From assembly GCF_006345805.1 (NCBI RefSeq), contig NW_021827694.1, positions 1-9,910 of the forward strand: DNA of 9,910 nt, given 5' to 3'. Positions 1 through 9,910 of this stretch are shown here, one piece after another. The translations under genes and the position numbers were made by a program. Position 1 is the stretch's first letter. Every line of letters starts with the position of its first letter. This stretch comes from Octopus sinensis (Eukaryota). A model generated the notes under the pieces. The model searched no databases. It saw only the letters and a list, made by a program, of their open reading frames with translations, and was not told where the DNA came from.

Positions 1-20
1 AAAAAAACCCCAAAATATAT

Positions 21-130
21 GGCACACTAGGCATAACAACAACGTGAACTTCCAACCTGTTGTCTCTTGAGGTCTCTGGGTGAGACTTGGAGCCAACTTG
101 TACAGACATAAAGCAAAAGTCAACACACCA

Positions 131-131
<1 letters not shown>
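21..131 (+). mobile_element. Possible 3' end of a non-LTR retrotransposon followed by an (AAT)n tail
   Basis: Non-repetitive segment (GGCACACTAGGCATAACAAC...GGTCTCTGGGTGAGACTTGGAGCCAACTTGTAC) running directly into (AAT)n. The resemblance to an octopus LINE 3' UTR is from memory only; no ORF is visible. Confidence 0.25.
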
Positions 132-199
<68 letters not shown>

Positions 200-220
200 T
201 GAGAACATTAATAATAATAA
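132..220. repeat. (AAT)n microsatellite
   Basis: Direct reading; one interruption (GATGAGAACATT). Confidence 0.97.
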
Positions 221-427
221 TTTCAAATTTTGGCTCAAGGGCAGATATTTTGGGGGAGAGGTAACTCGGTTACATGGACCCAAGTGCTCAACTGGTATTA
301 TTTCACCGACCCCGAAAGCATGAAAGACAAAGTCGACCTCGGCGGAATTTCAACTAATTTGAAGTAAAAAACGGATGAAATGTCGCTTGCCTGGCGTACC
401 AACGATTCTGCCGGGGGTCGCCGTCTT
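221..427 (-). mobile_element. tRNA-derived SINE, family 1, tail type A, near full length, diverged
   Basis: Reverse complement of the head and core of the 6273-6505 copy: AACTGGTA..., CGACCCCGAAAGCATGAAAGACAAAGTCGACCTCGGCGGAATTT, then ACGATTCTGCC (A box rc). Tail rc TTTCAAATTTTGGCTCAAGG abuts the microsatellite. Confidence 0.85.
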
Positions 428-460
428 AATATTAATTTTTTTTAAATCCTTCCTGCTGTA

Positions 461-635
461 AGGTACAAGGCGTGGAATTTGAAGGGAAAGGAATGGTGGA
501 TCACATCGACCTCAGTACACAACTGGTACTTCATTTATCGACCCCCGAAAGGATGAAAGGCAAAGTCGACCTCCTCGGAATTTGAACCCGGAACGTAAGG
601 TCAGTTGAGATGCCACGAAGTATTTTGCAGCATTT
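461..635 (-). mobile_element. SINE family 1 copy, 5' end eroded
   Basis: CACATCGACCTCAGT..AACTGGTACTT..ATCGACCCCCGAAAGGATGAAAGGCAAAGTCGACCTCCTCGGAATTTGAAC (core plus B box rc). Confidence 0.85.
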
Positions 636-642
636 CGAAATG

Positions 643-682
<40 letters not shown>

Positions 683-760
683 AATAATAATGATAATAAT
701 AATAATAATAACAACAACAACAACAACAACAACAACGATGATGATGATGATGATGATAAT
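643..760. repeat. Compound (GAT)n(AAT)n(AAC)n(GAT)n microsatellite
   Basis: Direct reading. Confidence 0.97.
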
Positions 761-948
761 TGGTTTCGAATTAAGGCTCGTGGTCAGTCATTTTAACGAA
801 ATGGGTTTAAGTTCATTACATCGGCACCCGGTTTTGAGTGCTACTTAATTTTATCGGTCACGAGAAGTCCGAAGACGAAGTTGATCTCGGCTAAGGATAT
901 GTGTTGCAAAAGCAATTTGTCCGACGCGCTGACGATTCTGCCAGCTCG
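761..948 (-). mobile_element. SINE family 1 copy, strongly diverged, B-box region deleted
   Basis: TTACATCGGCACCC..., GAAGACGAAGTTGATCTCGGC, and ACGATTCTGCCAGCTCG, the rc of the head CGAGCTGGCAGAAT. Confidence 0.7.
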
Positions 949-950
949 AT

Positions 951-951
951 T

Positions 952-1001
<50 letters not shown>

Positions 1002-1369
1002 GGTGCTGATGATGATGATGATGATGATGACGATGATTATTATGATGATGATGATGACGAGGTTTACGATGACGACGGCGATGATAATGGTGATGATGAT
1101 GATGATGATGTTGCTGCTGCTGCTACTGCTTCTGCTGCTGATGATGATGCTGATGATGATGATGATGATGACGAGGTTTACGATGACGACGGCGATGATG
1201 ATGCTGATGATGATGATGATGATGATGATGTTGTTGCTGCTACTGCTTCTGCTGCTGATGATGATGATGACGATGACGATGGTGATAATGACGACGATGA
1301 AAACGATTATGATGATAATAATGACGACGTCTACGCTGACGACGGCGATGATGATGATGGTGATGATGA
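951..1369. repeat. Compound GAT/GGT/GCT/GAC microsatellite with an internal 114-117 bp duplication
   Basis: ACGAGGTTTACGATGACGACGGCG at 1057 and 1171; CTACTGCTTCTG at 1123 and 1240. Confidence 0.95.
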
Positions 1370-1595
1370 ACATAAAGTGGATGACCTATGATAATACGAG
1401 CGACAAAGGCGGCCATATTGAAGAAAATGAAATTAAATTTTTATATCACGAAAACAAGGAAATAAACAAAAACAAAAAAGAAAACGAAAACAAAGGGAAA
1501 AAGAAAGGAAGATGAGTGCTGTGGTACCAAACAAAATAAATCCCATATCAAAGCAAAGGTAAACTACGAACCTAATCCCTGACCGTACCCCGCCG

Positions 1596-1700
1596 GGCCC
1601 CCATCAATTACTGGTACACTACAGTATTAACGCAACCACCGAAGTGATAAAAGTTAAAACTGTCCCGTGGTGAGATTCGAACCCGGAATGTACAAGTTTG
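1596..1700 (-). mobile_element. Old SINE remnant, probably family 1-related
   Basis: AATTACTGGTAC (1606-1617) and B-box rc GAGATTCGAACC (1672-1683) at the same relative order as in better copies. Confidence 0.4.
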
Positions 1701-1808
1701 GAAACGCATCTATTCAGAGGCACTTTATAGCATCTGAATTCTTTTACATCGTTCGGCAACATAACTGGCCATGCTGGAACACTGCTGTTTAAGCGAACTT
1801 TATCGCTG

Positions 1809-1846
1809 TAATAATAATAACAATAATAATAATAATAATGATGATT

Positions 1847-1899
<53 letters not shown>

Positions 1900-2139
1900 A
1901 TTGATGATGATGAGGAGGAGGAGGATCATGATGATGATAATGAGGATGATGATGTTGATGATGATGATAATAATAATAATAATAATAATAACAATAATGA
2001 TGCTGATGATGATGATGATGATGAGGAGGAGAAGAAGAAGAAGAAGAAGAAGAAGAAGAAGAAGAAGAAGAAGAAGAATGATGATGATGATGATATTGAT
2101 GATGATGATGATGAGGAGGAGGAGGAGGAGGAGGATAAT
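1809..2139. repeat. Compound AAT/GAT/GAG/AAG microsatellite
   Basis: Direct reading; the GATATTGATGAT..GAGGAGGAGGAT motif recurs at about 1897 and 2092. Confidence 0.97.
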
Positions 2140-2140
2140 C

Positions 2141-2326
2141 CTTTCTAAAATTTAGGTTGAGGAGGGGGCTAGTCGATTACATCGACTCCAGTGTTTAACT
2201 GGTACTTATTTCATCGAACCCCGAAAGGGTGAAATGCGAAGTTAAGCTCGGCGGAATTTGAACTCAAAGCTTAGAGGCAGACGCTAAGCATTTTGGTCGA
2301 CATGTTTAACGATTGTGCCAGCGGCG
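2141..2326 (-). mobile_element. SINE family 1 copy
   Basis: AGTCGATTACATCGACTCCAGTG..AACTGGTACTTATT..CCCCGAAAGG..CTCGGCGGAATTTGAACTC..ACGATTGTGCCAGC. Confidence 0.85.
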
Positions 2327-2344
2327 AACGGGCAGATTCACACC

Positions 2345-2455
2345 AAACAGCAGCAACACCAACAGCAGCAGAAGCAGCAGCAGCAGCAGCGATAACAACA
2401 ACAACAACAACAATAACAGCAGATGTAACAACTACATCAACAACAACAACAACAG
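2345..2455. repeat. CAG/AAC microsatellite
   Basis: Direct reading. Confidence 0.9.
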
Positions 2456-2460
2456 CTATG

Positions 2461-2670
2461 ATTTCGGTTTCAAATTTTGGCACAAGGCCAGCACTTTCGG
2501 GGAAGATGCTACGTTGATTACATCGTCCCCCAATGTTTAACTGGTACTTTTTCCATATCGACCGCGAAAGAATTAAACGACAAAGTCGTTCTCGGGAGGA
2601 ATTTGAACTCAAAACATAAAAACAGACGCCAAGCACTTTGTTCGGCAACATAACGATTCTGCCAGAGGCA
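2461..2670 (-). mobile_element. SINE family 1 copy, tail type A
   Basis: ATTTCGGTTTCAAATTTTGGCACAAGGCCAGCA tail rc, core, GAATTTGAACTC B box rc, ACGATTCTGCCAG A box rc. Confidence 0.85.
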
Positions 2671-2682
2671 ACACGGCACTTG

Positions 2683-2720
2683 AACAACAACAAAAACAAC
2701 AACAACAACAACAACAATAA
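2683..2720. repeat. (AAC)n microsatellite
   Basis: Direct reading. Confidence 0.95.
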
Positions 2721-2725
2721 GCATA

Positions 2726-2918
2726 ATTTCGGTTTCAAATTTTGGCACAAGGCCAGCAATTTCCAAGGATTGGCTAAGTCGTCTCACATCGAATCTAGTG
2801 CTCAAACTAGTACTTTGTTTATCGACCCAGGAAAGGATGAAGGGCAAAGTCGACCTCGGCGGGATTTGAACTCAAAACGTAAAGGCAGCCGCTAAACATT
2901 TAGTCCGACATACTAACG
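2726..2918 (-). mobile_element. SINE family 1 copy, tail type A
   Basis: Same ATTTCGGTTTCAAATTTTGGCACAAGGCCAGCA tail rc as the 2461 copy; GAAAGGATGAAGGGCAAAGTCGACCTCGGCGGGATTTGAACTC core. Confidence 0.87.
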
Positions 2919-2939
2919 CAAGCCTGCAAAATTACAAGA

Positions 2940-2971
<32 letters not shown>

Positions 2972-3000
2972 GGTGGTGGTGGTGGTGGTGGCGGTGGTGG
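2940..3000. repeat. (GAT)n(GGT)n microsatellite
   Basis: Direct reading. Confidence 0.95.
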
Positions 3001-3222
3001 TTCTTTCTAACTTTGGAACAAGGCGAGCGATTCTGAGGAGAAAGGACTAATCGATTACATCGCCCCCCCCCCACTCCCCACTCGGCCTCTATATATGATT
3101 GGTACTTTATTTTCATTGATCCCGAAAGGATGAATGGCTAAGCTGACCCCGGTGGGATTTGAAACCATAAAACGTAAAGAGTCGGAATTATAAACCTCAA
3201 GGCCTTTTTGTCCGACATCCTA
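3001..3222 (-). mobile_element. SINE family 1 copy with a C-rich insertion in the core
   Basis: TAATCGATTACATCG, TTGGTACTTTATT, GATCCCGAAAGGATGAA, GGGATTTGAAACC. Confidence 0.75.
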
Positions 3223-3244
3223 AAGAATAAGGAGTCGGGTTTTA

Positions 3245-3690
3245 CAAAGGTACAAGATCAGCGAAATGCTATTGTTTTGTTCTGCGAGGGAAGAGCGAGA
3301 TGATGAGGAAGAGGAGGAAAAGCTGCCTATATTATACAGAATATTTAACTGGTACTCTTTTTGTTGACGCCAAAAGATTGAATCATAAAGGAAGGGCACG
3401 CGTGGATTTTGAACTATGATCTAAAGAGATGCAGCTTTATACCTTCTCCTTCCTTTTACCAGTTCCGCAAACCCAACAGCATTTTTTTTTTTTTAATCAA
3501 AATAAAAAAAATTTTCCGAAAATATTCATAAGGCTACAAATTTGGAGAGAAATGGTTACTAGGTTCGACTAATCAACTTCAATACTGATGGTATATTTTT
3601 TTGAACTCCAGAAAGATGACCAGGGTGAAATACGAACTTAGAATGTACTCGTAAAGGTACCTTGGTACTCTAACGATTTAGCTAAGCGTT
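3245..3690 (-). mobile_element. Two further very old SINE family 1-like remnants (about 3245-3470 and 3527-3690)
   Basis: TTTAACTGGTACTC..GACGCCAAAAGATTGAA..GGATTTTGAAC, and CATAAGGCTACAAATTTGGAGAG..GATGGTATATT..CCAGAAAGATGA..CTAACGATT, in the family's motif order. Confidence 0.4.
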
Positions 3691-3731
3691 TTAATAATCC
3701 ACCAAATATAGTATCATCATTAATCATCGTA

Positions 3732-4080
3732 ATCGACCCCAGTGATTAACTGGTGCTTATTTAATCGACCCCCGAAGGATGAAAGGCAAAGTCGACCTCG
3801 ACGGAATTTGAACTCAGAACGTAGCGGCAGATGAAATACTTATTTCTTTACTACCTACAAGGGGGCTAAACACAGAGAGGACAAACAAGCACAGACAGAC
3901 GGATTAAGTCGATTACATCGACCCCAGTGCGTAACTAGCACTTATTTAATCGACCCCGAAAGGATGAAAGGCAAAGTCGACCCCGGCGGAATTTGAACTC
4001 AGAACGTAGCGGCAGACGAAATACCTATTTCTTTACTACCCACAAGGGGCTAAACACAGAGAGGACAAACAAGGACAGAG
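3732..4080 (-). mobile_element. Tandem pair (period 185 bp) of head-less SINE family 1 units, tail type B
   Basis: ATCGACCCCAGTG at 3732 and 3917; GAAAGGCAAAGTCGAC at 3781 and 3966. About 90% identity by manual count. Matches the 6273-6505 copy minus its first ~50 nt. Confidence 0.92.
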
Positions 4081-4486
4081 GTGATTTTAAAATGAGAATA
4101 TCTTAAATAAACTCGACTGCTCTCACAAATAAGAATACTAAAAATGAACCCGACTGCTCTCAAAAGAGAAAATAGAGTCATGAGGAAATAAAGACAAGTT
4201 GCACAGACCTGGATACCATTCAGCCGCAGTGTTGCAATATTAAGCAAAACAAGTATTCTTCCTGCGATTTTCAGACGTATGATCAAATTCCTTTTAAGGA
4301 ACTTCATCAAACACCATGTTGATAGCTAATAAATGAGAGCTGACGTCAAGGATCACATGAAAATGTAGCGCTAGCAACTTATACCATCAACAACCATTTC
4401 TTCTTAATACGAAGTTGTGTACAAACAAGAAAATGGCCGACTTAATAAAACCGTGGTTCATGATATATATATATATATATATATAA

Positions 4487-4842
4487 CTAGCACTATGACC
4501 CGAGTGCATGCATATACAGCTGCATGTGTGCGCACAAACACGCGAGTACTGTCCAAATCTCCGACCAGTCACATACAGTTAACTGGCATTCAATTGGCGT
4601 ATCAAGTTTCGGGCATTTTGATTGGGTTTTGGATAGAAAATTCACAAAAAAAGTTACTTCTATTGATTTTTTAATGGCTTTGCGGGGTGACTGGGGAAAT
4701 GTAAAGATATACACAACCACCCTTGGACGGTTTTGAATGACCATAGAAAGTGCGAGCCCTCTAACTGAAAAAATGTGGATTTGTATAAAGGACACGCACA
4801 CACAGACAGACATTTTGCCGTTTATATATATATATATATAGA
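4487..4842 (-). mobile_element. Non-autonomous Helitron-like element, 356 bp
   Basis: On the minus strand it starts A|TC (4842-4841, TCTATATATA...AAACGGCAAAATGTCTGTCTG) and ends CTAG|T (4490-4487), i.e. 5'-TC...CTRR-3' inserted in an AT dinucleotide with no TSD. Imperfect palindromes (CAGCTG-centred; TGTGCGCACA) lie within ~60 bp of the CTAG end. Confidence 0.62.
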
Positions 4843-5397
4843 TTATATAATTTGAATACACGTGGTGTGTAAAGGTGCGAGTCGTTGTATATTAGAAAGC
4901 CTTAGCTGTGATATGAAATCCTAAGAATGTAAATATAATTACTTAACTGCGTTATATGCAGAAAAATGCGAAAATATGATCCTGGCAAATCATTTCTGAG
5001 TTCGTTCCCCTCTTCTTATAAGAGCATAAAACAATTTAACTACCACATAAATCAGTAATACCTGAAGGCGTTATTGCAGTGGATAACTTTATTTGCATAT
5101 CTGTACTATAAACGGCTTGTCACTAATTAAGCAATATATATGTTATTCACAACATGGTGTGGATCAGAAGAACTAGAATGATCTGAAAGTTTTAAAAGAC
5201 CTACATGTGGTAGGAAATTATTACAATGTAGACATATTCATTATATGCTTTAGGTGTGAATAAAACTTTAAGGTGAAATTCCTGGTGAACCGTGACGAAT
5301 TTGCTGAGCATTCCTCGGAGGATACGAACCTGGTTTCCTGTCTAACAGTCATACAGACAGGCATATATAAACGCACAACAGCATTTGCATATTATAT

Positions 5398-5425
5398 CTG
5401 TGTGTGTGTGTATGTATATACATTA

Positions 5426-5480
<55 letters not shown>

Positions 5481-5754
5481 TATAGATAGAGAGAGAGAGA
5501 GGTGAGATGCATACATATGTATATATATTATATATATATTATATATAATATATTAATATATATATATATAACGTGTGTGTGTGTGTGGTTTGTGGTTAAT
5601 GTGAATGTATGTGTGCGCATGAGTGTGTGAGTGTTTGCGTATTTATTATAACATATATTTACATATAGATTTGTACTATATATACATACACATAAAATGT
5701 ATATAAAATACATATAAAAAATATATATAGAGAGAGAGAGAGAGAGATACACAA

Positions 5755-5803
<49 letters not shown>

Positions 5804-5927
5804 CATGCATATGCATGTGTGTGTGTATGTATACATGTATACAAACATACACACACACACACACACATACACACACATACACACACACACACACACAAAT
5901 ATATATATATATATATACACATACATA
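5398..5927. repeat. Compound (TG)n/(TA)n/(GA)n/(CA)n dinucleotide microsatellite field
   Basis: Direct reading. Confidence 0.95.
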
Positions 5928-6187
5928 TAGGGCGTTTGGGCTGTATATGACAGTTTGCGTAAAAGGAAAAGAAATCCTATCCAAAAAGTAGGTGTTTTAA
6001 ATTTTTTTTTTGTAAATTCCAACTGGATCAATACTGAGAGATAAAAATTTACTCAAAGTAGCGGCCCTCAGCGTCCACTACGGCCTCAAGTTGGCCCCAA
6101 AATCTGGAAAGATCTTCGAACACCTTCTTCCAGTAATCGCTGGGCATTGAGCAGCAATCGTGATGTCGGTGTTTTGATACCTGACAT

Positions 6188-6204
6188 GTACTTGCTTCGG
6201 CAGT

Positions 6205-6239
<35 letters not shown>

Positions 6240-6267
6240 TAGCATGGCCCCTGCGTTCCATATTTTT
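6188..6267 (+). pseudogene. U6: U6 snRNA retro-pseudogene with both ends intact, a 28-nt internal deletion and a 1-nt insertion
   Basis: GTACTTGCTTCGGCAGTACATATACTAAAATTGGAACGATACAGAGAAGATTTAGCATGGCCCCTGCG|TTCCATATTTTT. ACAGAGA box at 6228-6234 (U6 nt 41-47), 5' stem-loop GUACUUGC-UUCG-GCAGUAC, oligo-T 3' end. Relative to human U6, CAAGGATGACACGCAAATTCGTGAAGCG is missing. Confidence 0.95.
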
Positions 6268-6272
6268 CTAAA

Positions 6273-6505
6273 GGCGGCGAGCTGGCAGAACCGTTAGCAC
6301 GCCGGGCGAAATGCGTAGCCATATTTCGTCTGCCGTTACGTTCTGGGTTCAAATTCCGCCGAGGTCGACTTTGCGCATTTCATCCTTTCGGGGTCGATTA
6401 AATAAGTACCAGTTTCGCACTGGGGTCGATGTAATCGACTTAATCCGTTTGTCTGTCCTTGATTGTCCCCTCTATGTTTAGCCCCTTGTGGGGAGCAAAG
6501 AAACA
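6273..6505 (+). mobile_element. Full-length tRNA-derived SINE, family 1, tail type B
   Basis: GGCGGCGAGC head, A-box-like TGGCAGAACCG (6283-6293), B box GGTTCAAATTCC (6346-6357), core CATCCTTTCGGGGTCGATTAAATAAGTACCAG, 3' end AGCCCCTTGTGGGGAGCAAAGAAACA matching the tail in 3732-4080. Confidence 0.93.
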
Positions 6506-6709
6506 GATACCTGGCATGTATGGTCATGGTACAGGTAACTCTTTTGCAATATTCAGATCGCTCCCAGCTCTCTATCTCAGCTAACTTTTCCTCAACTACA
6601 ACTTAAATCTTTATGCTCTCCAACGCCGTTGATGACTGTTCACTAATGCATCAAGCTGTTTCTCCCAAAAAGAGACAAAGAAATCGTCAGATTCAGCCCG
6701 AATACCCTG

Positions 6710-6767
6710 TGTGTATGAGTGTGTGTGTGTGCGTGTATGTGTGTGTGTGTGCATGTATGTATATATG

Positions 6768-6802
<35 letters not shown>

Positions 6803-7066
6803 GTATATATTTATATATATATATACATATATATCATATATATATGCATATATATACATATATATGTGCACACAACACACACACACATATATATATGTAT
6901 GTATATATATATATATATATGTGTGTGTGTAATATGTATATATGTATATATATATGTGTGTATGTATATATATATATATATATGCACGTATGTATGTATC
7001 TATCTATACACACACACACACACATACACACATATATATATGTTTGTGTGTATGTGTGTGTGTATT
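6710..7066. repeat. Compound (TG)n/(TA)n/(CA)n microsatellite field
   Basis: Direct reading. Confidence 0.95.
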
Positions 7067-7427
7067 TCTTTTATTAGTTTTTTATCGATAAAATATGAAT
7101 ATAAACAAATGTATAAAGAAACAAACAAAAAAGAGACAACAGCTGTACAAATATACAAAACAAAGTCTTTTTTTTAAAAAAAAAAAAACAACAATGTTAT
7201 TTTCTACTTTTTTTTATTCCTTTATACTTTTTACCATATTTTTTTTTATGTATTGGCCTTATTGAGGCACACTTGATGCGAAAGGAAATAAAATAAAAAT
7301 TTTTTTCAAAGATCAAAGCGTTTCGAATTTTTGTTTGTTTTGTTTTGTAACAAAAAAAAACCAGAATAAATAAACTTGAACAAAAAAAGAAAAAAAACTG
7401 GAAAATATTTTATGATAACTAATTGCT

Positions 7428-7636
7428 CTTGTTGTTGTGTTGTTGTTGTTGTTGTTGCTGTTGATGACGAAGATGATGATCGTGGTCATGTTGTTGTTAA
7501 TGATGATGATGATGATGATGACGACGATGATTATGATGATGATGATGATGATCGTGTTGATGTGGTTCAGGATGACGATGATGATGATAATGATGATGAT
7601 CATGGTCATGTTGTTGTTAATGATGATGATGATGAT
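7428..7636. repeat. (GTT)n then (GAT)n compound microsatellite with a 120-bp internal duplication
   Basis: C(G/A)TGGTCATGTTGTTGTTAATGATGAT at 7481 and 7601. Confidence 0.95.
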
Positions 7637-7940
7637 TCGTAAGACTCGCAGAAGAGAAAGCAGGTCAGCCCCCGACACCGAGAGCATCGACGGATGGATG
7701 AATGCGCATCCAGGCTCAGCGGTTGCATAGGAAGTCGGGGACAAGAAACAGGAAGAAAGAGTGAGAGAAAGTTGGAGTTAAAGAGTACAACAGGGGTCGC
7801 CACCACCCACCCCCTGCCGGAGCCTCGTGGAGTTTTAGGTGTTTTCGCTCAATAAACACACACAACGTCCGATCTGGGAATCGAAACCACGATCCTCCGA
7901 CCGCGAGTCCGCTGCCCTAACCATTGGGCCATTGCGCCTC
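7637..7940 (-). mobile_element. Full-length tRNA-derived SINE, family 2, with an (ATC)n tail
   Basis: Minus strand reads GAGGCGCAATGGCCCAATGGTTAGGGCAGCGGACTCGCGGTCGGAGGATCGTGGTTTCGATTCCC (A box TGGCCCAATGG, B box GGTTTCGATTCC), then an unrelated body, ending in (ATC)n. Resemblance to the octopus OR-type SINEs is from memory. Confidence 0.88.
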
Positions 7941-7978
7941 TTTTTGTTGCTGTTGTTGTTATTCTTGTTCATAGTCGT

Positions 7979-8011
7979 AGAAGTGGCTGTGTGGTAAATA
8001 GCTTACTTACC
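7979..8011 (+). mobile_element. Short 5' head fragment of a further tRNA-derived SINE
   Basis: AGAAGTGGCTGTGTGGTAAATAGCTTACTTACC contains A-box-like TGGCTGTGTGG; the sequence stops before any B box. Confidence 0.4.
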
Positions 8012-8145
8012 TTTGTCGTGGATAGACGTGTTTTTTGGGGGTGAGTCAAATGTTTTGTTGAACGTTGGAAAACTTTTCTATTGGAATTGTTGTTTATTGT
8101 TGAATATTTTCGAACTGTTGAACATTGTTGAACTTGAAATTTTTG

Positions 8146-8173
8146 TACTTTTTCCCGTCGACGGGAAAAAGTA
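8146..8173. repeat. Perfect 28-bp palindrome TACTTTTTCCCGTC|GACGGGAAAAAGTA
   Basis: Arms checked base by base; no spacer. Confidence 0.95.
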
Positions 8174-8195
8174 ATTGTTGAAATATTGAAATTAT

Positions 8196-8355
8196 GGATC
8201 TTTTCCTTTTGATAGCCAGATTTCAACACAATTTCTAGTTAACTAAACACTTTAAAACTTCGTATACTGGTAGAATGTGTCAAAAGAAAACATTATTTTC
8301 ACTTGGCTTTTTTGATAAATTTAGTTAAAATCTGGCTATCAAAAGGAAAAGATAC
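8196..8355. mobile_element. 160-bp MITE with GG-starting TIRs and an 8-bp TSD (Merlin-like), internally deleted
   Basis: Left TIR GGATCTTTTCCTTTTGATAGCCAGATTT; right end AAATCTGGCTATCAAAAGGAAAAGATAC (27/28). TSD GAAATTAT (8188-8195) / GAAATAAT (8356-8363). Its interior matches the rc of the right part of the 9341-9676 element. Confidence 0.85.
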
Positions 8356-8393
8356 GAAATAATTAATATTATTAATATTGAACTTATTAAAGT

Positions 8394-9115
8394 CGTTGTA
8401 GGCTTTATTGTCGTGCCCCCCACCACCACCACCACGGGGTGGAATTTGGACTGTTATCCTCATTAAGAGGAAAAGAAATATTATAGGTTTCCCGTTTTGG
8501 GTGATAAGCAATTTATTATTGCGTGAAAAATTAAATTTTAGCCGTTGTAGGCTCTATTGTGGCATCCGACCCTAGCGTGGGCGAGATTTGAACTGTTGTC
8601 CTCGTTGTGACGAAAAAAAATATTATAGGTTTCCCGTTTTTTTGGATTCTATATTTTACTATTGTGTTAAAAAAAAAATAATTTCGAACGTTGTAGGCTT
8701 TGTTGCTAGGTCTCGCCCCCCAGCTGGGGTGGGATTTGAACTGTTGTCCTCATCAAGAGGAAGAAATATATCATAGGTTTCCCGTTTTGGGGGATAAACA
8801 ATTTATTAGTGCGTGAAAAATTAAATTTTAGCCGTTGTAGGTTCTATTGTGGCATCCGCCACTAGCGTGGGCGAGATTTGAACTGTTGTCCTCGTTGTGA
8901 GAAAAAAAATATTATAGGGATCCCGTTTTGGGGATACTGTATATTTATTACTGTGTGAAAAATTTAATTTCGAACGTTGTAGACTTTGTTGCTAAGTTTC
9001 GCCCCCCGGCGGGGGTGGGATTTGAACTGTTGTCCACGTTGAGAGAAAACAAAAAGCAAAAAATTATAGGTTTCCCATTTTCTGGGATTAAATTGTGATT
9101 AATTTATTTCGAACG
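8394..9115. repeat. Satellite-like tandem array, five ~139-149 bp monomers with ~290-bp dimeric higher-order periodicity
   Basis: CGTTGTAG starts at 8394, 8543, 8689, 8833 and 8975. Monomers 2-5 carry GATTTGAACTGTTGTCC (variant in monomer 1); all carry a TATAGG..CCC.TTTT.GG motif. Confidence 0.92.
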
Positions 9116-9218
9116 AATTATGTCGGTCGAAATAATTCAAGAAACAAACCAGCTGCATGAGTCAGCAAAAAAGTTCGCGGCAGTAACCGCTGTATCTTGT
9201 AAAAATGTTGTAATAGAA

Positions 9219-9769
9219 ACGGGGACGCAATCACACCAGCATCGGTTGTCAAGCGATGCTGGTGTGATTGCGTCCCCGTAACTTAGCGGTTCAGCAAAAG
9301 TGACCGATAGAATAAGCACTAGGCTTACAAAGAATAAGTCGGATCTTTTCCTTTTGAACGGCACATGTCAACACAATTTCTAGTTAACTAAACACTTTAG
9401 TTCACTAAAAATTTAGGGTTAGGGTGATGTTTAGGGTTAGTGACAGGATGTTGTCTCAGTTTTAGACGCAGCAAATGATTTTAGCTCAATTAGAGGCGAT
9501 TCATTGGTTAAAATTCGAAAAATTAAACTACGTTAAACAAACGAATTACAATTTTATCAAGAAAGCCAAGAGAAAAAAATGTTTTATTTTGACACGTTCT
9601 ACCAGTATACGAAGTTTAAAAGTGTTTAGTTAACTAGAAATTGTGTTGACATGTGCGGTTCAAAAGGAAAAGATCCAATAAGACCTGGGGTCGATTTGCT
9701 CGACTAAAGGCGGTGCTCCAGCATGGCTGCAATCAAATGTCTGCAACAAGTAAAAGAGTAAAAGAGTCC
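9219..9769 (+). mobile_element. 5'-truncated SINE 3' part (family 3), interrupted by a MITE and starting with a perfect hairpin
   Basis: ...AACTTAGCGGTTCAGCAAAAGTGACCGATAGAATAAGCACTAGGCTTACAAAGAATAAGTC[MITE]CTGGGGTCGATTTGCTCGACTAAAGGCGGTGCTCCAGCATGGC... ending in an (AGTAAAAG) repeat tail. It shares the CTGGGGTCGAT..TCGACT motif with family 1. Family identity is partly from memory. Confidence 0.7.
9341..9676. mobile_element. 336-bp MITE with 58-bp TIRs and an 8-bp TSD (Merlin-like)
   Basis: TIR 9341-9398 vs 9619-9676, 57/58 identical, starting GGATCTTTTCC. TSD AATAAGTC (9333-9340) / AATAAGAC (9677-9684). Confidence 0.92.
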
Positions 9770-9884
9770 TTTTCAGAACTCACCCGGTAGGTCAACGGGC
9801 AAAGGTCATTTCACCTCTTTCCAGTTCCAGTCTTGATTTCGAGGACGTTTGGTTAGTATTTCTAGCTTGTCGGATAACCATGTT

Positions 9885-9910
9885 AGATCTTTTCGCTTTG
9901 ACCGGCAGTT
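9885..9910 (+). mobile_element. Start of a third related MITE TIR, cut by the window edge
   Basis: AGATCTTTTCGCTTTGACCGGCAG resembles GGATCTTTTCCTTTTGAACGGCAC. Confidence 0.5.

Follow-up and report, generated by a model that had tools for sequence, protein, structure and literature searches.

A U6 snRNA copy that stands directly in front of a SINE raises the question of whether the two came to their site together or one after the other and, if together, how they were joined. Such a pair lies within the window, by which we mean the whole stretch of DNA analysed here (9,910 nt of Octopus sinensis, assembly GCF_006345805.1, contig NW_021827694.1, positions 1 to 9,910 of the forward strand). In it, a U6 pseudogene is followed in the same orientation by a SINE, and a single target-site duplication (TSD) encloses both. 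We consider it very likely that the pair is a chimeric retrocopy laid down in one retrotransposition event. The locus is made up as follows:

5930-6175, unstranded: left flank, unique sequence between (TG/TA)n microsatellites
6176-6190, plus strand: left TSD copy, GATACCTGACATGTA (direct-repeat search; shuffle control)
6188-6267, plus strand: U6 snRNA retrocopy, 80 nt (Rfam RF00026 and global alignment to human U6)
6268-6272, plus strand: junction CTAAA, between the T5 run of U6 and the tRNA-like head
6273-6505, plus strand: SINE body, with A-box-like and B-box-like motifs, a conserved core (GGGGTCGAT...) and the tail ...TTGTGGGGAGCAAAGAAACA
6506-6520, plus strand: right TSD copy, GATACCTGGCATGTA (direct-repeat search; shuffle control)
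6521-6700, unstranded: right flank, unique sequence up to a microsatellite starting near 6700

The U6 copy

A covariance search with Rfam model RF00026 matched 6188-6256 on the plus strand with 59.5 bits, against a gathering score of 44, and an E-value of 2.9e-13 over the whole window or 1e-14 when the region was searched alone. This match spans model positions 1-66 of 105. The copy begins at G1 and keeps both ACAGAGA and AGC, and its 5' stem-loop is intact, with every pair of the 5' stem canonical in the Rfam alignment. Past a gap, global alignment to human U6 follows the canonical 3' end GCGTTCCATATTTTT as far as 6267, where the copy closes in TTCCATATTTTT (T5); since G1 and this T run are the natural limits of U6, both ends have been kept. 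Between them the copy measures 80 nt rather than the ~107 expected, with 28 nt cleanly missing inside it. In human numbering the missing block is 68-95 or, equivalently, 65-92, a placement that is ambiguous because GCG flanks both breakpoints; the breakpoint falls within the GCG at 6253-6255, so that the deletion ends display 3-nt microhomology. Next to the AGC triad, at 6238-6240, there is also one surplus T. Compared with human U6 the copy has three substitutions, all of them in the 5' stem (a compensatory pair, G3-C17 to A3-U17, together with C6 to U6), and they look less like decay than like the U6 sequence of the lineage itself. A preliminary description of this DNA had already placed a U6 copy at 6188-6267 with a T run at its end; extent and ending stand, while the view of it as a plain copy has to give way to one with a 28-nt internal deletion and an extra T.

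These two lesions make the copy non-functional. The deleted block takes in the loop and 3' strand of the internal stem-loop, including the catalytic bulged U (human U74), and the copy consequently falls short of the complete RNA of about 107 nt, with the 3' strand of this stem-loop, that characterises a functional U6. Upstream, direct reading found no TATA-like motif at 20-35 bp from U6 (6153-6168 reads agcaatcgtgatgtcg), as had been noted before for position -30, and the sequence there belongs to the duplicated target; of the type-3 Pol III promoter of a functional U6 gene, with a TATA near -30 and a PSE near -60, the copy thus lacks the TATA. Because the internal deletion removes the catalytic bulged U and no TATA-like motif lies upstream, we class the copy as a pseudogene. 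A native U6 gene, likewise dismissed in the preliminary description, is ruled out by the 28-nt deletion, the missing TATA and the enclosing TSD. As to its origin, the deletion could reflect a skip by the reverse transcriptase or a later slippage deletion.

The target-site duplication

The two TSD copies match at 14 of 15 positions and lie exactly at the outer edges of the unit formed by U6 and SINE. When the two 33-35-nt flanks were shuffled 3000 times, the best shuffle reached 11 matches against the 14 observed, and the only scores above that of the TSD elsewhere in the window came from microsatellites. That one duplication brackets the whole unit, as first described, is borne out by these figures. 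Run on U6 alone or on the SINE alone, the same script found a best repeat of 5/6, which is at chance level. One TSD around both parts and none around either is the arrangement of the Group IV chimeras of Doucet 2015. We read simultaneous arrival from the TSD at this one locus: because a single duplication encloses both parts, and neither has a repeat of its own, one event is the reading that we adopt. The preliminary description had reached it as well, and it agrees with all that the structure offers, namely one TSD with no nested repeats, U6 on the 5' side in the same orientation and ending in T5, and a pseudogene without a promoter.

The first three bases of U6 had been said to match the target, and the GTA at 6188-6190 is in fact both the last 3 nt of the left TSD copy and U6 nt 1-3. 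Because GTA is common to the left repeat and U6, the length of the TSD is given as 12-15 bp, and the 5' junction shows 3 nt of microhomology, a common signature of LINE cDNA joining to its target.

Two independent insertions would be the obvious alternative to a single event, either with the SINE arriving first with its TSD and a U6 cDNA later between TSD and SINE, or in the reverse order. There is a precedent in some adjacent snRNA/Alu pairs without a common TSD, which are probably two events (Doucet 2015, PMC4476161). At the octopus locus, however, the second insertion would need a TSD or tail of its own, and none is present; it would also have to hit 0-5 bp from the SINE end, flush with the TSD. 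The structure effectively refutes the two-insertion model, and we regard it as extremely improbable.

The target flanks

The target is an island of ~440 bp of unique sequence between (TG/TA)n microsatellites, and the preliminary description had taken its flank for the remnant of a mariner transposase. We rebuilt the empty site by joining the two flanks (...GTCGGTGTTTTGATACCTGRCATGTATGGTCATGGTACAGG...) and translated it in all frames. In none of the six frames of the joined flanks was there a Pfam match at E<=10, and PDB at E<=10 returned neither Mos1 nor SETMAR, only noise (PCNA, splicing factor 45). For the longest open stretch (6052-6189, minus strand), HMMER found no transposase among 1.84 billion representatives, only three unrelated repeat proteins; a word-indexed protein search of the flank translations gave no candidate, and BLASTP against the Mos1 C-terminus gave nothing. 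In these searches the flank thus showed none of the similarity to DD34D transposases that membership in Mariner/Tc1 would call for, and the transposase reading is not supported. A likeness of ...RFWGQLEAVVDAEGRYFE* to the mariner C-terminus, seen by eye, was dropped for want of support from Pfam, PDB, HMMER or BLASTP. It had also been envisaged that mariner relatives might refute the TSD; because the flank is not demonstrably mariner, that argument has no basis yet.

The island is flanked by long (TG)n/(TA)n microsatellites at 5400-5920 and 6700-7070. Dozens of Rfam microRNA matches fall there (mir-3149, mir-297, mir-466 and others), and we rejected them as microsatellite artefacts, all being below their gathering scores.

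The SINE partner

The SINE lies on the same strand as U6. Its head, GGCGGCGAGCTGGCAG..., reads GGCGGCGAGCTGGCAGAACCGTTAGC... right after CTAAA, and its 3' terminus, ...AAAGAAACA, is at 6505. Direct reading identified an A-box-like motif, TGGCAGAACCG, at 6283-6293 (8/11 matches) and a B-box-like motif, GGTTCAAATTCC, at 6346-6357. ARAGORN made no tRNA call for the SINE head, and no Rfam tRNA model matched it even at E<=10. Copies of the element in the window are too diverged or 5'-truncated to fix its first base, with a weak AAG-GCGGCG signal in the copy alignment, and the SINE would be complete to its 5' end only to within about 5 nt. The element had been introduced as a full-length, tRNA-derived SINE in the orientation of U6. 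Its orientation is confirmed and its completeness holds to ~5 nt, whereas the tRNA origin is unconfirmed: the A- and B-box-like motifs suggest it, but ARAGORN and the Rfam tRNA model give no match.

Because ten further partial copies occur in the window, the focal SINE is a dispersed repeat. These copies, detected by blastn, have 76-90% identity and are all on the minus strand, and the density of SINEs over the 9.9 kb is ~1 per kb (blastn). In being a multi-copy, dispersed short element, it conforms to what is expected of a SINE2. The consensus translation of the best-conserved SINE frame had one match in a collection of 5.8 billion protein sequences, UniRef A0A0L8H450, which is an uncharacterised 56-aa ORF from Octopus bimaculoides (83% identity, full coverage, E 1.7e-19). 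This match supports the view that the SINE belongs to an octopod family, as well as the cephalopod lineage proposed in the preliminary description. SINEs are the largest repeat class of octopus genomes, with about 40% of transposable elements, mainly tRNA-Core and tRNA-Deu (PMC8967140). Because the tail of the focal SINE is not poly(A), it was probably mobilised by a stringent LINE (RTE, CR1, Dong or similar).

Other repeats in the window

Further repeats were recorded alongside the focal locus. At least seven minus-strand copies of the focal SINE superfamily lie at 240-3230. Most of them end in (ATT)n, (ATC)n or (GTT)n, in some cases over hundreds of bp (950-1340, 1810-2140); these trinucleotide tails are unlike the focal AAAGAAACA tail and are reminiscent of RTE-associated microsatellite tails. 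At 3732-4079, minus-strand SINE copies form a tandem array (period 185 bp, 1.9 copies, 91% matches), each unit of which starts near SINE position 55 (TATTTCGTCTGCC...), 2 nt after the ...AAAGAAATA tail of the previous unit. This array could represent head-to-tail template jumping or an emerging SINE-derived satellite, and the same truncation point in two units favours tandem duplication. A third SINE type was seen by eye on the minus strand at 7640-7950; its reverse complement starts GAGGCGCAATGGCCCAATGGTTAGGGCAGCGGACTCGCGGTC..., a clearly tRNA-like head, for which ARAGORN made no call.

A MITE-like element at 9341-9676 has 58-nt terminal inverted repeats that are 98% complementary. It interrupts another SINE copy (9184-9340 and 9677-9790) and is flanked by AATAAGTC and AATAAGAC; with its 8 bp, this TSD suggests a transposon of hAT type. 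Another MITE-like copy, shorter in its interior and with 44-nt arms, is found at 8191-8360. Within a SINE copy, 9219-9279 forms a near-perfect 30-nt hairpin (97% complementary, 1-nt loop) with sub-threshold Rfam microRNA matches (47.5 bits for MIR4359, where the gathering score is 75). Finally, 8436-9054 is a tandem repeat with units of ~142 bp (4.3 copies), a 290-bp higher-order periodicity and two 184-nt blocks that are 91% identical; its units contain GGGATTTGAACTGTTGTCC, which is reminiscent of a B-box/T-arm.

The junction and the joining step

U6 ends ...ATATTTTT at 6267, and the SINE head begins 0-5 nt later on the same strand. What lies between them is the five bases CTAAA at 6268-6272, in keeping with the earlier statement that the two are joined through only CT(AAA). 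The U6 copy is thus located 5' of the SINE and joined at its own 3' T run, as in the U6 chimeras of Group IV (Doucet 2015). The 12-mer CTAAAGGCGGYG (6268-6279) is seen again at 9704-9715, in the 3' part of a different SINE family, where 0.01 matches would be expected; in the copy alignment, moreover, AAG precedes the GCGGCG-like start in 2-3 other copies of the focal SINE superfamily. Because CTAAAGGCGGYG recurs at 9704 and AAG precedes other heads, we judge that CTAAA, in all or part, is probably 5' sequence of the SINE or of its transcript and not untemplated filler. The focal SINE family and this other one also have a GGGGTCGAT...TCGACT module in common. Together, the common 12-mer and module suggest that octopus SINE families stand in a mosaic relationship.

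At type-2 promoters, Pol III transcripts start 10-15 nt upstream of the A box. The junction sits 10-15 nt upstream of the A-box-like motif, a position from which it would follow that the reverse transcriptase had reached a natural RNA 5' end. In the window, the junction 22-mer occurs once and no other SINE head has U6 upstream of it. A protein search with the minus-strand ORF across the junction yielded no candidates. Among metagenome contigs the junction had 0 matches, as did the SINE core used as a control, so this null is uninformative; the SINE head pattern had 0 matches in GTDB genomes and viral contigs, which are collections without an octopus genome.

From this structure we infer an RNA intermediate, a responsible LINE and a template switch. 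A LINE endonuclease would nick the target on its bottom strand, at the point where GATACCTGRCATGTA begins on the left (...GTGTTTT^GATACC... in the top strand), and the LINE reverse transcriptase would prime on the 3' tail of the SINE transcript (...AAAGAAACA) and copy it to or near its natural 5' end. The enzyme would then move on to the 3' end of U6 snRNA, at its U5 tract, and run to U6 nt 1-3, after which microhomology over 3 nt (GTA) would serve to join the cDNA to the target; the 12-15-bp duplication would be left once the staggered nicks had been repaired. The 28-nt deletion in U6 and the extra T would have arisen during reverse transcription or afterwards.

For the step that joined SINE RNA to U6, a switch of template by the reverse transcriptase is the explanation we lean towards. 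The U6 part has no A-rich tail of its own and therefore no independent priming site, and a standalone U6 offers no tail usable by a non-poly-A (stringent) LINE. A primary Pol III transcript has a 5'-triphosphate. Since the SINE looks like a whole primary transcript, and would hence bear this triphosphate, a template switch is favoured over ligation. The major mature form of human U6 ends in five U (PMC6789731), and the T5 of the octopus copy agrees with that end.

Ligation would place the joining step before reverse transcription, with mature U6, through its 2',3'-cyclic phosphate, connected to a 5'-OH SINE RNA by an RtcB-type ligase and the SINE tail then used to retrotranspose the chimera; in the genome, the result would look the same as after a template switch. 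Both human U6/L1 and other RNAs attached to U6 have been shown to arise by this route, and experiments on human U6/L1 chimeras favour it, ahead of reverse transcription, over template switching (PMC6789731). At our locus, the T5 end is the end of mature U6, and should CTAAA belong to the SINE or to a host transcript, nothing intervenes between the joined parts, which is what ligation predicts. However, the reaction needs a 5'-OH, and a 5'-triphosphate dramatically reduced RtcB ligation in vitro (PMC6789731). It is improbable that chance cleavage would fall so close (about 5 nt) to the start of the SINE without direction by the tRNA-like head, and there is no sign of head-directed processing here. 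Overall, we deem ligation unlikely.

Alternatively, the chimera may have been transcribed as such, by read-through or 5' transduction from a U6 gene with a SINE (CTAAAGGCGGCGAGC) just past its terminator, where Pol III leaks past T5 and the resulting single RNA is retrotransposed. Such an origin accounts for the exact U6 +1 start, the common orientation and the short spacer without any switching; SINEs are dense in the window, at about 1 per kb, and SINEU-2 elements have 5' extensions transcribed from flanking sequence (PMC4494074). Against this, it requires a SINE ~5 bp from a U6 terminator and in the correct orientation, and no source locus of such a kind is known. In addition, T5 is an efficient Pol III terminator. 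We therefore hold read-through to be quite unlikely. The structure alone does not separate template switch, ligation and read-through transcript, and the internal deletion in U6 is left unexplained by all three alike.

The junction could also be the mark of a U6-headed composite SINE family, similar to SINEU, that propagates with it. The 28-nt U6 deletion would be a natural marker of this family if other copies had it, but the junction 22-mer is single in the window and the other SINE heads there are without U6 upstream. Moreover, U6 uses an upstream promoter and no internal snRNA promoter has been reported (PMC4494074), while the internal T5 would terminate Pol III, and transcripts from the A/B-box promoter would leave out the U6 part by starting downstream of it. 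Such a family, of which the window gives no positive sign, appears highly improbable. We think it very unlikely that octopods have a firing source locus (a U6 gene plus SINE) or else a small subfamily of U6-headed SINEs with the 28-nt deletion as its mark; if true, snRNA-headed SINEs would for the first time be known from outside crocodilians, and for the first time with a Pol III snRNA as head.

Comparison with known chimeras

For comparison, the preliminary description had relied on mammalian U6/L1 and U6/Alu chimeras and on SINEU, a set that proves too narrow, since platypus Mon-1 and six AnolisSINE2 cases were already published (PMC4476161). Doucet 2015 described U6 chimeras with non-L1 LINEs and their SINEs, from the L2 and RTE clades and with the same architecture: U6/L2 and U6/Mon-1 in platypus and, in Anolis, three U6 chimeras for each of the L1-, L2- and RTE-like LINEs as well as six U6/AnolisSINE2 (PMC4476161). 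In platypus, U6 was found only attached to L2 or Mon-1 sequence, with which the lack of a usable tail on a standalone U6 agrees, and the authors concluded that non-LTR elements generally switch templates to U6 (PMC4476161).

The octopus locus resembles platypus U6/Mon-1 (L2) and Anolis U6/AnolisSINE2 (L2-type) in having U6 5' of a SINE, here putatively of tRNA type, with a LINE-specific, non-poly-A tail, and it has in common with these Group IV chimeras the same orientation of both parts, a common TSD and the absence of a free-standing U6-poly(A) form. It differs from them in that its host is a protostome, that one locus is seen here, and that its U6 has an internal 28-nt deletion. Compared with platypus in particular, where most cases lack the 5' part of U6, the octopus copy keeps both ends, and its TSD is 12-15 bp long rather than 1-9 bp.

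Mammalian U6/L1 and the rare U6/Alu chimeras (Buzdin 2002/2003; Garcia-Perez 2007; Moldovan 2019, PMC6789731) share with it a full U6 5' end, a T4-5 junction, a single TSD of 12-16 bp and microhomology at the 5' junction. In contrast to U6/L1, where the L1 partner is variably 5'-truncated, the octopus partner is a complete or near-complete SINE and its tail is not poly(A). The ligation route favoured for human U6/L1 is also harder to apply to a SINE transcript with a 5'-triphosphate.

The SINEU elements of crocodilians, with heads derived from U1/U2 (Kojima 2015, PMC4494074), likewise have an snRNA at the 5' end of a SINE-like retroposon, probably through a similar 5' addition. SINEU are amplified, many-copy families with Pol II snRNA heads, whereas the octopus chimera is seen in a single copy in the window and has at its head U6, a Pol III snRNA whose terminator lies inside the element. 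Outside animals, the bi- and tripartite MGL/MINE chimeras of Magnaporthe, attributed to LINE template jumps (PMC2104539), are a non-mammalian case in which a small-RNA copy lies 5' of a LINE/SINE 3' part within one TSD; there the small RNA and the host kingdom are different, and the main class is without U6.

The octopus locus is therefore a further instance of a chimera type already known in vertebrates. The full-text literature that we searched held no report of a U6 chimera from a mollusc or other invertebrate, an absence that is no proof, and the locus may be the first protostome example.

Significance

By vertebrate standards the chimera is mechanistically ordinary, and its interest is mainly taxonomic. 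One locus establishes nothing on the points below beyond its own existence, and no functional consequence was seen. If our reading is true, a protostome joins the mammals, monotremes and the lizard in which capture of U6 by LINE machinery was known before, with fungal analogues. This would fit the view that joining to U6, whether by template switching or by ligation, is general to non-LTR retrotransposition and not a peculiarity of L1. LINE activity has been proposed in the octopus brain (PMC9115989), and U6 chimeras would provide dated, single-event markers of active LINE/SINE pairs and of the behaviour of their reverse transcriptase.
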